Position numbers and translations under genes: made by a program
Shown: piece after piece, positions 4,031 to 37,485 of the stretch
Layout: the number at the start of each line of letters is the position of its first letter
How positions within the stretch are numbered: the first letter of the stretch is position 1
DNA from: Octopus bimaculoides
Lineage: Eukaryota
Direction: 5' to 3'
Assembly: GCF_001194135.2 (NCBI RefSeq)
Contig: NC_068994.1
Location: 29,735,731 to 29,780,444, forward strand
Length of the DNA: 44,714 bases
Notes under the pieces: generated by a model
Database searches by the model: none
Told to the model about the DNA's origin: nothing
What the model saw: the letters and a program-made list of their open reading frames with translations, nothing else

Positions 4031-4141
4031 CTATAGTAGTGTTCTTTAGCTGAAAATAATTATTTCGATCACAAAGGGTTGAGTATTCAACATTTTCAAT
4101 ACAATCATCTATTAGTAAACCTGTGAGCGTTTCATCATCAT
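4031..4141 (-). CDS. Host gene exon 8 in window (111 bp, phase 1-1): (H)DETLTGLLIDDCIENVEYSTLCDRNNYFQLKNTTI(G)
   Basis: Minus-strand acceptor tgtttttgtctatctctcttgtacctag and donor gtaagt. Open in the frame continuing from exon 12916-12826. Confidence 0.75.
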
Positions 4142-4212
4142 CTAGGTACAAGAGAGATAGACAAAAACACAACCGTCAGTTTGGTAAATAATCTATGAAA
4201 TAGTAAAACCCG

Positions 4213-4380
4213 GAAAATTCATATATATGCGTCTGTGTGTGTGTGTGTGTGTGTGTGTGTGTGTGTGTGTGTNNNNNNNNNNNNNNNNNNGTGTGGGTGT
4301 GTGTGTGTGTATGTGTGTGTGTGTGTGCGTGTGCGTGCGCGCGTGTCTGTTTGGCATACACACACATACATATATATACA
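4213..4380. repeat. (GT)n microsatellite containing an N gap
   Basis: Direct reading of the sequence. Confidence 0.95.
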
Positions 4381-4410
4381 TAGAGAGAGATATATAAATC
4401 CCATAATATA

Positions 4411-4625
4411 CCAGGGGTACTGAAAAGTTCCTGGCTTTGGATAAAAGAAAATACAGGAGGATAAGTTAATTATAATTGTATTCAACATATTTCCCTCTCA
4501 GATTCACACAATAATTGCAATGGTCCTTCAGTTTTTCTAAGCCCTGTAAAAAGACTCGGAAAGTTAGGCCTCCAACCAGGCTTTTCTCGATACCCTTAAA
4601 GCCAAGAACCTTTCAGTACCCCTCA
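4411..4625. mobile_element. Mariner-type MITE, 215 bp, TA target duplication
   Basis: Left end TA|CCAGGGGTACTGAAAAGTTCCTGGCTTT; right end (reverse complement) TA|TGAGGGGTACTGAAAGGTTCTTGGCTTT. About 28-bp TIRs, no ORF. Confidence 0.85.
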
Positions 4626-4630
4626 TAAGT

Positions 4631-4962
4631 GCTGTCTTTTTGGCCCTAAGGCCGTATTTTTCTCGTTTCTTATTTATTTCGTCTTTGTCCATCGTCTTAC
4701 ATTTTTTTACTTTCGTATGGCAACTCTTTGTTGTTTTGTTTGTTTCAGGCCTGGCATTCTCCGCGACTTTCGCAGGTACCACCAATATGGAAAGTTCTCA
4801 GTCTTATCATTAATGGTGCGAAACTGAGTATTACCATTTTGGCTGATAACTGATGAAGAATTAGAGAACCCTCTGTGTCTGCTTCCCGTCCGGTTGTTCC
4901 CTCAGTATACGTATACGCTTTTTATCTGTCATTGTTTATTTACAATGCATTTTTCCATTTAT
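4631..4962. repeat. Unclassified ~330-bp repeat, copy 1
   Basis: Aligns by eye with 5722-6040 (ggccctaaggcc...ctgataactgatgaagaattag...gtccggttgttccctcagtatacg...tttacaatgca). Confidence 0.8.
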
Positions 4963-5318
4963 TAAGTAACGGTACGCACGGACACCCGACTTTTTTAAGC
5001 AATAAGTTTATATATATTCTGTGTGACTCTATTCTTGCCTTCAGTCTTTCTCCTTTTCTCGCTCACCCTCTTACTTCTATTTCTAGCCTGTCCACTTTCT
5101 CCTTTATTTTCTCTCTCTATTTGTAACCTTTCTCCCTTCATTTCTTCCCTTGTTTTCCCTCTACTTTCTCTCTGTCACTCTCTCTCCCTTTCTCCTCTAC
5201 CTGCTGCTGACACATGACCCGTGGCCAGCTTTTCTTTTTTTCTCTCCCGTTTTCACACCGGTCACCCAGCCATTCGGTTGCAAAAAAATTCTTTTCTTGC
5301 TATTTCCATATTCTTTGT

Positions 5319-34024: not shown

Positions 34025-34499
34025 CTGAATTATACAGAATTACATAGATTTAAATAAAACAGGTAAAGTGTGATTTATAATATATGAAATATCGCAATGT
34101 TGTGAAAATATATATGCTAAACTTGCTAAATATAACATATATGATCTGTAGTGTGTGATCTGTGACCTATGGAAACAACAAACGTTCTGAAATATATGAA
34201 AGTAGGTAAAAAGGGTGAAATGTAATATGTGATAACCTAAACATTATATTTCATTTGTTATGTAAGGTAGCAAGCTGACAGAATCGTTGGTACGCGGGAT
34301 AAAAAAAAATGCGGGATCTGTGGGTCGTGCCTCTGGCTGTATAACGACAATAACGACAGCTGCTATCATTCCTATCACTTGTAAAAAGAGAAAAATAATT
34401 CGTAATTAAATAGTAATTCGTTATTTTAATTTTTAACTGAAATATTGTACATTAGGAAAAGGGAATATTGTGAAAATAGTGTTGACGATGTATAGTTAC

Positions 34500-34711
34500 C
34501 TCATCTACATTCAGTTTCAAACTATTGGGTGCCGCCATGTAAAAACTACTTATCTGTTTACATAGCAAGCCAGGTACGAGGAAAATATCTGTGAAACCGG
34601 ACCTGATTCCCGACACTTTATGAACTTCTTTTTTATTTATTATAAGCGTAAGGTTATTGACCGGGAATTCTGAACTGGCGTTAGATTTAACCAATAACAG
34701 CCAATTATAAT
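34500..34711 (-). CDS. Host gene exon 2 (212 bp, phase 1-0): (D)YNWLLLVKSNASSEFPVNNLTLIINKKEVHKVSGIRSGFTDIFLVPGLLCKQISSFYMAAPNSLKLNVDE
   Basis: Acceptor tgctatttaatttcag; donor GAG|gtaact. IRSGFTDIFLV resembles PLAT FERGSTDTF.V. Confidence 0.85.
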
Positions 34712-35419
34712 CTGAAATTAAATAGCAATACAGATAACCAATGACAATAAAACAGTTGTAATTAATAGAAGGGAGAATAAGTGGTAATCAATTAACTAAA
34801 GAGATATCATATATGACTGGATGCCAGCAAGAGCTCAAAATCTATTCTCACAAGGACACCTATGAGTATGCAGAGTTTGTATAATTGTTTAGTGGCTTAG
34901 AGCAGGAAGTGGTTGCTCGAAAACCTAACTAGGGCCACTTTAGATTGTAAGACTAAATCTATCTCGAGCCTGACCCAAATGCTTTCAACAGAATGAGCCC
35001 CAGTAAGTCCATCCAAGCATCAGGTGGTGATTTTGAACGGAGGGATGGATTATGAATAGATAACGTTCCTCTTATGGACTTTGTCAGAAGGAATTCCTTG
35101 GCGCTATTACAGGTACATTCCACTGAATAATGTTACTTAATATAATATATTTTGATTTAATTTATTTAATGAACTAATATTCTACTTTAATTTATTTTAT
35201 TCATTTATCTTTATATTTCCTAGCATCACAAACTGCGCTCGTTTATGGATACATAACACCCTTTCTTCAGATTATTTTCTTGTTTGCATATATTTAATAC
35301 ACCGCTCTTTTTCTTAAGAGTGTATATATATTTGTTGTGTATATTTTACAGGTGTCTATAGGAATCTATTTATGTATATTTAGTATCCACATATTTATCT
35401 TCTTGCGGATCCCACCAAG

Positions 35420-36560
35420 AAGATGTCCAAGTGTTGTTAGATCATGTGAACTCAATAAAGCCATCCATACACAATGGAAAAGTATAAAGACAGGCTGGCA
35501 TTCCTGGACGTATTTATAACACGCACCAAGTATGGATTCATGACATCCGTATACCGCAAGCCGACTTTTACTGGACGATACCTCAACTTCAATTCCCACC
35601 ATCCATACAGTGTAAAGAGAGGGATTGCTCAGTGCCTAAAACATCAGGCAAAGAATATAAGTAGCGATCGCGATACACACCACGAAGAAATGATCAAGCT
35701 CAATAACGATCTGTTAAGCAACAACTACCCTGAAAGTATACTATCTGCTCTAATTATGAAGAAAAGAGAGGATGAGGCCAATAAACTGTCCACAGTCTGT
35801 CTACCCTATGTGAAAGGCCTCTCCGAAAAGATACAAAAGATATGCGGCCCATATGACATCAGCACAGTATTCAAGAGTAATACAACACTTCGCAAATATC
35901 TCCTTCAAGTAAAACCACCAATGGAAGAGAATACGACCAAAGACTGCGTGTACTCAATCCCATGCAGCTGTGGTAGGTTATACAAAGGCGATACAAATAA
36001 GAGTAGACGAACATCGCAAAGCTGTGACACGAGAAGATATTGATAAATCGGGTATAGCTGATCATGTATGGAAAAATGGAGGTCACCTCCCCCTGTGGGA
36101 TGAAGTTAAAATAATAGACAGAGAACACCACTGAAAAATACGAAAACTAAAAGAAGCTGCCCATATGCTAGGACACAACAAGCTCCTAAGCAGACCGAGT
36201 GCAGATATGAGCAGCATATAGGAACCGGTATTAAGGAAGGATAGAAAAATATTAGATTTATAAATCCTGAAATTCGCTCCATAATTGCCCACGGGCATAT
36301 GGCGTAGTGGTTAAGAGCGCGGGCTACTAACCCCAAGATTCCGAGTTCGATTCCAAGAATATTAATAATAATAATAACATCAAAAATACCTTAGGAATGA
36401 GAATCCAGGTTCGAAATTTCCCCAAAACACCTGAAGGTTGGAGGGTATATCAGCCGAAACGTTGTGTTAACAACAAACAAGATGAGGACAAATATCCGTC
36501 GAATGTAAATAATGTAAATAGTGTAAATAATGTACATAATTTCTCATCTCTTAAATATAG
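35420..36560 (+). mobile_element. Penelope-like element copy B (RT thumb plus GIY-YIG and 3' module)
   Basis: LAFLDVFI, VYRKPTFTGRYLNFNSHHP, CLPYVKGLSEKIQKI, CVYSIPCSCGRLYKG. In-frame stop and frameshift near the end. Same 3' UTR as copy A. Confidence 0.9.
36293..36355 (+). promoter_or_regulatory. tRNA-derived Pol III promoter (A and B boxes) embedded in the Penelope 3' UTR; second copy at 26896-26975
   Basis: A-box TGGCGTAGTGG (36300-36310) and B-box GAGTTCGATTCC (36343-36354). No acceptor stem, so not a tRNA gene. Confidence 0.65.
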
Positions 36561-36567
36561 AACTGTA

Positions 36568-36650
36568 TTATATATATATATATATATATATATATATATA
36601 TATATATATATATATATATATATATATATATAAAGAGAGAGAGAAAGAGG
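36568..36650. repeat. (TA)n/(GA)n microsatellite
   Basis: Direct reading of the sequence. Confidence 0.95.
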
Positions 36651-37397
36651 AGAGGAGAAACAAAGAATTCATAATTATTGTGGTAGGAAGTTGAAGATTA
36701 AAAATATATATTGAATACGTATGTATACACGTGTGTATGTGTGTGTGTGTATGTAGGCGTGAGTATGTGTATGTGTGTGTATAATACTTTGGTTAGACAA
36801 ATTCAGATGTGCTTTGTGAAATTTATGTGTTTTGGGTTACACCATATATCGTTCTTACATATTGAGTTTTTTTATTTCTTTCCTAGCCATAAGAGAACTC
36901 TGGAAGAATTTTCACTCTTTAGTAGGACAAGATTTTTTTTCCAGTTGCATATAAATGCGCTTGCTCCGTTACCCATATACATCTTGATTGTTTTATATTC
37001 AACACATCGTGGCCGACTTATTTACTTTTAGGCTTCACGGTAATCATTCTACGCCGTCTGAAGGGGCAAACTGTCAACGAAATTTGTAAGCGTTCCTGAA
37101 TGCTATCGCAAAGGTAATATGCGTATATTTCCTTCATGTAGGTATATTTAAATTCATTAGTTTAATTTATATATTTCAAAAAGGTATTAGTCATAACCCC
37201 AACTCAATTCTAATTATTTTCAGAGGGCTTTTTATATACTTAGATTATAATAATTATGATTCCTTCTCTTATTTTAATCAACCTAAACTTATGAGAGAAA
37301 GCACTTGCCTAAGGCATCGTACAAACATGCCTACGGCATTCGATTTGTTGAATAAAAGAATGGAACACCATTGCGAAAGAGTTATTTTTATACATAC

Positions 37398-37485
37398 CAT
37401 TGAAAGTTGCTTTGCATCCAAGTGCCTTTTGTGTTAGTGTCATCGCGACAAAATGTACAATTTTAGTTACAAACTTAAGAGTCAC
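37398..37485 (-). CDS. Host gene exon 1 in window (88 bp, phase 0-1): VTLKFVTKIVHFVAMTLTQKALGCKATFN
   Basis: Acceptor atatatttctttcag; donor AATG|gtatgt. Same size and phase class as the other second-half exons; G|AT joins in frame to exon 34711. Confidence 0.75.

Follow-up and report, generated by a model that had tools for sequence, protein, structure and literature searches.

The minus strand of a 44,714-bp stretch of the Octopus bimaculoides genome (contig NC_068994.1, positions 29,735,731 to 29,780,444; "the window" below means this whole stretch) carries eight exons that sequence comparison places in the interior of the gene orthologous to O. sinensis LOC118765933, so that the locus is not a new one. 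They are best explained as part of a real, fast-evolving octopus gene, the predicted product of which is a membrane-anchored surface glycoprotein with at least two divergent PLAT-like units; a probability of roughly 0.7 is given to this reading. A preliminary description of the DNA had presented the locus as a hidden 33-kb gene. The gene is real, but the 33 kb span only part of it, as exons continue outside both ends of the window, and it is not hidden in general, being annotated in O. sinensis, although it may be unannotated in O. bimaculoides. The protein consists of beta-rich units, each about 100 residues long and specified by two exons, of which the long one (phase 1 to 0) comes first and the short one (0 to 1) second. 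Judging from the ortholog, the part of the gene downstream of the window would add a further beta-rich unit, a Ser/Thr-rich, mucin-like stalk and a CxCxC motif, after which the chain would form a short helix, cross the membrane once as a helix and end a few residues later. The protein would enter the secretory pathway, and its PLAT-like units, N-glycosylated and disulfide-bonded, would be shown on the cell surface on top of the stalk. The PLAT-like sandwiches might serve to bind a lipid, a membrane or a protein ligand, which is the least certain step of the proposal. Fast change at exposed positions would then be due to weak constraint or to diversifying selection in an immune, gamete, or chemosensory recognition role.

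A scan of the minus strand for open segments bounded by AG and GT returned the eight exons exactly as they had been predicted, with 1123 nt and 374 stop-free codons in total (Table 1). In the acceptors, AG follows a pyrimidine-rich tract, and the donors read GTAAG, GTATG, or GTAAC. The described alternation of long exons (209-233 nt) with short ones (88-91 nt) was borne out as well, except that it is broken by the last exon, which is 111 nt long and runs from phase 1 to phase 1. The window has a G+C content of 38.6%, contains seven N runs, and is rich in microsatellites; chance alone should, as we roughly estimate, produce about 35 stop-free runs of 77 codons in DNA this rich in A and T. As chance open frames are this common, independent evidence was sought and the model does not rest on the open frames. 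A protein search with the full spliced concatenate retrieved the 608-residue "uncharacterized protein LOC118765933" of O. sinensis (P0001; E 3e-140, 76% identity) and, as second match, a partial model of O. vulgaris (P0002). When both proteins were compared with the window by tblastn, the ends of the matches coincided with the predicted boundaries for seven of the eight exons, which are thereby confirmed. The full concatenate was needed for the protein search, a word-index search with unit B alone giving no match. The protein collection held no protein identical to the exons of the window, and the gene's own-species protein was not found in it. The last four exons of the ortholog lie about 10 kb or more beyond exon 8 in O. 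sinensis, that is, past the start of the window.

The O. sinensis locus (L001), which comes from an independent chromosome-level assembly, runs collinear with the window over every gap. The five N runs inside the gene span (Table 1) are all intronic and touch no exon, and no exon of the O. sinensis gene model falls at the equivalent positions. Scaffolding errors are therefore not the source of the exon order, orientation, and phase.

The preliminary description had read a PLAT pattern in the two exons of unit B, with which both profile comparison and a structural comparison of a paralog agree. Using hhalign, the profile of unit B (four sequences) was aligned with a lipoxygenase PLAT profile, assembled from PDB-alignment sequences, at a probability of 87.5% (P 3.6e-6) and with 86 columns that stay in register between strands 1 and 7. 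For the profile of unit C (five sequences), a probability of 35% (P 4e-4) over 60 columns was obtained. In 100 column-shuffle controls, the maximum score was 16.5 for unit B, against 37.2 for the real profile, and 17.1 for unit C, against 26.6. A profile HMM search of the PDB with unit C retrieved the PLAT domain of three pancreatic lipases (E 0.02-0.2). An AlphaFold model of P0019, a protein with units B and C of a paralog, had a pLDDT of 63-77 in unit B and eight strands per unit. When this model was compared with the PDB by Foldseek, all compact hits were PLAT domains, namely those of 8R-, 5-, 11R-, and 15-lipoxygenase, alpha-toxin, and PLRP1; the source proteins include coral 8R-lipoxygenase, human 5-lipoxygenase, and clostridial alpha-toxin. 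The probabilities were 0.8-1.0 and the E values 6e-3 to 0.3, and the best lipoxygenase hits superposed with an rmsd of 2.7-3.5 Å over about 110 columns. In the paralogs, unit B reads TGDIGTDDG...LDT.NDDF...W, which is nearer to the PLAT consensus than the version in the window. Profile comparison thus identifies unit B and, more weakly, unit C as very divergent PLAT/LH2 beta-sandwiches, in line with the model of the paralog.

Several results weigh against this assignment. The Pfam PLAT family (PF01477), which had been proposed as a check, was absent, like every other Pfam family, at E values up to 10 from unit B, the spliced window protein, P0001, and P0002, and PLAT was absent at E values up to 1 from the paralogs P0003, P0007, and P0019. 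Neither P0001 nor the unit B profile had a match among PDB sequences, and unit A and the downstream unit D gave no signal when compared by hhalign with the PLAT, unit B, and unit C profiles. Structure prediction, which had been suggested as well, gave a usable model for the paralog only: the AlphaFold model of the ortholog P0001 was unusable (pLDDT 35.7), so that the structural support comes from a protein that is only 30% identical, at modest Foldseek E values. Units A, B, and C were not significantly alike in pairwise Smith-Waterman comparisons with shuffles (z at most 1.7), and hhalign of unit B with unit C gave a probability of 1.2%. The claim of tandem PLAT repeats therefore stands for unit B and, more weakly, for unit C; it does not extend to units A and D. 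The case for repeats therefore lies in exon architecture and not in sequence. This layout points to duplication of a two-exon module, and the five consecutive long-plus-short exon pairs of the paralog P0132 argue that all units descend from one such module. The negative results listed here, together with models of low to moderate confidence built on alignments of 4 to 9 sequences, would fit a different explanation, in which the units are another beta-sandwich or a new fold and the PLAT likeness is a motif coincidence amplified by AlphaFold. Such a coincidence is considered unlikely, given a register held over 86 columns at a score more than twice the best of 100 shuffles, the independent retrieval of pancreatic lipase PLAT domains with unit C, and compact Foldseek hits that are PLAT throughout and represent four protein families. 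In addition, a protein that shares the C-terminal module described below reaches the Pfam threshold for PLAT.

The C-terminus of the ortholog P0001 (residues ~520-608) contains, in this order, a Ser/Thr-rich stretch, CxCxC, an NLT site, a short helix, the sequence TSKYIRSK.S.PD.R.SS, and a hydrophobic helix close to the end, with three residues after it. The same module is present in the paralogs P0003, P0132, and P0007; the copy of the gene in the window would sit past the window start. In a phmmer search with P0001, this module drew 131 protein hits, 118 of which have a transmembrane segment at their end. The sources of 16 of the 131 proteins were looked up and were bivalves, a gastropod, octopods, or sequencing-run assemblies. 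The outer domains identified by Pfam in the module proteins that were scanned comprise F5/8 type C, C-type lectin, IgGFc-binding, Ephrin_rec_like, and Methyltransf_FA, while no Pfam family covered the module itself in these proteins. One transcript-derived protein with the same module, P0035, has a signal-like N-terminus followed by a domain at the Pfam PLAT threshold; a stretch of it looks like a C-type lectin by eye, without a Pfam hit. Signal peptides were judged by hydropathy only. On this crude score, a strongly hydrophobic N-terminus was seen in 10 of 45 longer models of module proteins, and the N-terminus of the paralog P0132 (MAPKYRQKIINETFLHLIFIILPIYTCGG) is signal-like. The signal-like start of P0132, the signals of module proteins, and the conserved sequons and cysteines together favour a type I membrane-anchored surface glycoprotein as the product, with a probable extracellular location of the units. 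The earlier suggestion of a secreted protein would accordingly hold for the extracellular side, with all 8 sequons and all 11 cysteines kept, and not for free secretion, the product being anchored.

There are also points against such a topology. Stalk and transmembrane helix lie outside the window and are taken from the ortholog for the gene studied here. Neither the window nor the 10 kb upstream of the O. sinensis gene yielded a signal peptide for this gene, and both ortholog models look 5'-truncated, as they begin inside a domain. Basic residues stand directly ahead of the transmembrane helix and, on their own, would argue for an N-terminal side in the cytosol. A real gene could thus encode a cytosolic, tail-anchored product, the helix of which inserts post-translationally so that the PLAT-like units face the cytoplasm as do those of LOXHD1, polycystin-1, and the lipoxygenases. 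It would agree with the lack of a signal peptide in either ortholog model, with a helix that is followed by only three residues and preceded by a K/R-rich stretch, and with the fact that classical PLAT domains mostly act at the cytosolic face of membranes. This topology is nevertheless quite unlikely: both ortholog models begin inside a domain and are thus truncated, the paralog P0132 has a signal-like start, and in other proteins, several of them with clear signal-like N-termini, the same module comes after C-type lectin, F5/8 type C, and IgGFc-binding domains. The long, Ser/Thr-rich, mucin-like stalk of the ortholog and the complete retention of sequons and cysteines point in the same direction, so that the type I surface glycoprotein is the favoured product.

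Comparison of the window with O. sinensis revealed an uneven distribution of changes. The exons differ at 12.4% of sites (139/1123) and are thus 87.6% identical, the alignable intron sequence differs at 8.3% over 17.7 kb, and the 30-nt splice flanks differ at 4.5% (95.5% identical). According to the method of Nei and Gojobori, dN is 0.136 and dS 0.140; their ratio is 0.97 (bootstrap 95% interval 0.67-1.48). The transition to transversion ratio is 1.1 in exons and 1.7 in introns. Introns show 9 indels per kb, from which about 10 would be expected in the exons, whereas one in-frame indel of 3 nt was observed (P 4e-4). In simulations with 139 random substitutions, only 2% of the sequences stayed stop-free. 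At an overall protein identity of 76.5%, all cysteines (11/11), tryptophans (3/3), and arginines (9/9) and 22 of 23 aspartates are kept, as are all eight N-X-S/T sequons; substitutions also avoid Y and G. The pattern is that of a real protein with an apparently constrained scaffold and surface positions that change freely or under positive selection. Both relaxed and positive selection fit this comparison of two species and are put forward as candidate explanations only. It is very unlikely that the locus is decaying or non-functional in O. bimaculoides, with frames open by chance and an O. sinensis model that is a functionless prediction: the dN/dS ratio near 1, which weighs against the preferred explanation since it is equally expected of a decaying gene, the higher divergence of exons than of alignable introns, and the own-species protein not found in the protein collection would agree with decay, but the frame is open in all eight exons of both species (a stop-free outcome has a chance of about 0.02, and one indel at most a chance of about 4e-4), splice sites are better kept than exons or introns, changes avoid C, W, R, D, Y, G, and the sequons, and diverged paralogs have the same architecture.

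An exhaustive phmmer search with P0001 against 1.84 billion representatives yielded full-length relatives in Octopus and Argonauta only, next to proteins sharing the C-terminal module, and no link to LOXHD1. The absence of LOXHD1 orthology and the lineage-specific nature of the family, the latter raised as a possibility in the preliminary description, are in agreement with this result. The relatives include the O. bimaculoides paralog LOC106884345 (P0003), the locus of which (L002) does not overlap the window, a protein of Argonauta hians (P0007), and the paralog LOC118766054, represented by P0132 of O. sinensis and the fragment P0019 of O. vulgaris. At least three paralog lineages are present in Octopus, and these are mutually 26-32% identical. 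On O. sinensis CM016872.1, the ortholog (29.42-29.48 Mb) and the paralog LOC118766054 (L003, 30.28-30.34 Mb) are located about 0.85 Mb apart. It is conceivable, albeit doubtful, that these genes constitute a small, linked, fast-diversifying receptor family of octopods in which PLAT domains, glycosylated and set in tandem outside the cell, came to serve as a recognition array carried by a mollusc-specific stalk and membrane anchor, under positive selection in an immune, gamete, or contact-chemosensory role. No literature on LOC118765933 was found.

Two of the models contain sequence that appears foreign to the protein. Residues 1-40 of P0019 (CAI9732767.1) are a helix-turn-helix (HTH) segment of a Sleeping Beauty transposase fused to units B and C, most likely as an artefact of gene prediction. 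P0002 contains what looks like retained intron sequence.

The exons and the gaps are listed in Table 1. Exon S0 is a probable exon and the least certain of the eight. It is not part of the annotated orthologs P0001 and P0002, but has a good acceptor and donor. Its counterpart in O. sinensis (L001 6228-6317) has an open frame and both splice sites, with 19 of 88 nt changed, and its motif C..TF....WLL is also present in the paralog P0132. No long partner exon of S0 was found within the window, and no upstream exon could be located with the N-termini of P0002 and P0132, either within the window or within the 10 kb that precede the O. sinensis gene. For exon L1, the tblastn match with P0002 (71% identity) ends at the exon edges; the exon is 89.6% identical to O. 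sinensis at the nucleotide level and its splice sites are kept. The short exons have changed unevenly. Exon S1, matched by P0001 residues 13-45, is the best conserved of all exons, with 3 of 91 nt changed, against the 19 changes in S0. Exon S2 is variable: it matches P0001 residues 120-152 at 61% identity and differs from O. sinensis in 16 of 88 nt, with splice flanks that are 97% identical. Exon L2 encodes TGSIGIDDGV, LDTADDDF, and DCGPLKCIKV and belongs to the unit with the clearest PLAT-like character. Exon S3 matches P0001 residues 221-251 at 84% identity and contains the sole exonic indel, an in-frame difference of 3 nt. Exon 8 encodes an acidic linker with cysteine that joins unit C to the following beta-rich unit, itself beyond the window; the splice sites of this exon are the strongest in the window and the paralog P0132 has an equivalent exon of 32 amino acids.

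Table 1 Exons of the LOC118765933 ortholog in the window and assembly gaps within the gene span
Feature	Position	Strand	Length and phase	Remark
Exon S0	37398..37485	-	88 nt, 0 to 1	Probable short exon of the unit upstream of unit A
Exon L1	34500..34711	-	212 nt, 1 to 0	Long exon of unit A
Exon S1	33934..34024	-	91 nt, 0 to 1	Short exon of unit A
Exon L2	29009..29241	-	233 nt, 1 to 0	Long exon of unit B; P0001 residues 39-124
Exon S2	22328..22415	-	88 nt, 0 to 1	Short exon of unit B; predicted last strands of the sandwich
Exon L3	16651..16859	-	209 nt, 1 to 0	Long exon of unit C; P0001 residues 153-220
Exon S3	12826..12916	-	91 nt, 0 to 1	Short exon of unit C
Exon 8	4031..4141	-	111 nt, 1 to 1	P0001 residues 253-288 at 67% identity
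Gap	4273-4290			Flanks at most a few hundred bp apart in O. sinensis
Gap	11129-11290			Flanks at most a few hundred bp apart in O. sinensis
Gap	17657-17756			Flanks at most a few hundred bp apart in O. sinensis
Gap	26371-26655			Inside window-only sequence (~24.6-28.6 kb), not in O. sinensis
Gap	31730-31739			Inside window-only sequence (~29.3-33.6 kb), not in O. sinensis

The introns measure about 0.5-8.5 kb and are rich in transposon relics and microsatellites. Upstream of the first exon, the plus strand carries a Helitron relic (40442-42150) that consists of the end of Helitron_like_N followed by a PIF1 helicase (E 1.6e-24). At least the part at 40082-41112 matches O. sinensis L001 5565-4585 at 88% identity and hence predates the split of the two species. 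The relic gives rise to a misleading antisense open frame that resembles a ninth, long upstream exon (41675-41464; 212 nt, phase 1 to 0); this candidate was rejected because it lies antisense within the relic, between the Helitron_like_N and PIF1 portions, and has no ortholog support. A transposon-like open frame (YRKPTFTGRYLNFNSHHPYSVKRGIAQCL...) is present in two plus-strand copies, at 25939-26664 and 35474-36043, and the copy that was scanned had no Pfam match. The first of these copies holds the gap 26371-26655, in about 4 kb of sequence that is not in O. sinensis. A further plus-strand open frame of 231 amino acids (18178-18873) includes a stretch that by eye looks integrase-like (HPKADGLVERFHRRLKESL); Pfam reported nothing at E values up to 0.01. 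Long CA/TG and GA repeats and related microsatellites, which translate as CMYV, occur at 4291-4340, 19416-19618, 28264-28691, 37677-38063, and elsewhere. They flank several of the assembly gaps and yield many spurious open frames on both strands. Transfer RNA and Rfam scans of the window gave no matches.

If the proposed explanation is correct, it would provide a fold and a likely location for octopod proteins that are now labelled "uncharacterized" or misnamed "A-agglutinin anchorage subunit-like". It would add a further example of the use of tandem PLAT domains outside the cell, and it would draw attention to a conserved module of stalk and transmembrane helix by which many outer domains of lectin type are anchored in molluscs. 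A protected frame with kept cysteines and sequons, combined with near-neutral amino-acid change, makes the gene a candidate for a recognition molecule under diversifying selection. For annotation, the lesson is that at least one octopus protein set lacks this gene or has it in incomplete form, and that two others have it truncated.

The closest known systems are the orthologs themselves. The loci of the window and of O. sinensis are collinear, with alignable introns that are about 92% identical, and seven exon boundaries are identical. The ortholog models carry no domain annotation and differ from the gene model given here in that P0001 begins inside unit A and P0002 omits units B and C; what the window contributes is unit A in intact form and, probably, one more exon upstream. 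At the C-terminal end, the gene, as read in its ortholog, resembles mollusc proteins of the predicted type I stalk and transmembrane kind (P0035, P0028, P0046, P0086, and P0013), with which it shares the module CxCxC...NLT..EL...TSKY.RSK.S.PD.R.SS. In P0035, the shared module occurs together with a signal-like N-terminus and a Pfam PLAT domain. The module proteins of molluscs differ from the octopus protein in carrying F5/8 type C, C-type lectin, IgGFc-binding, Methyltransf_FA, or a single PLAT domain instead of a PLAT-like array, and in occurring in bivalves and gastropods besides octopods.

PLAT is normally a cytosolic membrane-targeting module, although secreted examples are known from lipases and alpha-toxin. 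With the PLAT/LH2 family (PF01477), which comprises the N-terminal domain of lipoxygenases and the C-terminal domains of pancreatic lipase and alpha-toxin, units B and C have an alignment in register in common, including TG..G.DD.V.L.L.G, and the paralog model, with eight strands per unit, superposes on solved domains, at modest Foldseek E values. In contrast to that family, the octopus units remain below the Pfam threshold, and the core tryptophan is gone in the ortholog pair, whereas it is kept in the paralogs. They also have conserved cysteines and sequons, and would form a tandem array on top of a mucin-like stalk, with a probable extracellular position.

LOXHD1, which consists of 15 tandem PLAT domains and is a cytosolic protein of hair-cell stereocilia, is similar in its tandem PLAT-type repeats. 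It has, to our knowledge, neither a stalk nor a transmembrane helix, both of which are present in the octopus ortholog. Another protein in which PLAT domains are combined is LAP1 of Plasmodium, which travels through the secretory pathway and is targeted to the crystalloid organelle; we know of no stalk or transmembrane anchor in it. LAP1 (LCCL lectin adhesive-like protein) is a modular, adhesive-like protein that, like the octopus gene product, has more than one PLAT domain, namely two (PMC11285972), but it belongs to an unrelated lineage and contains SRCR and LCCL domains. PLAT domains in modular proteins of the secretory pathway are therefore known, which does not agree with the view in the preliminary description that an extracellular multi-PLAT protein would be an unusual family. 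The membrane-anchored, extracellular PLAT-like array on a mollusc stalk proposed here is a novel arrangement and not a new category.

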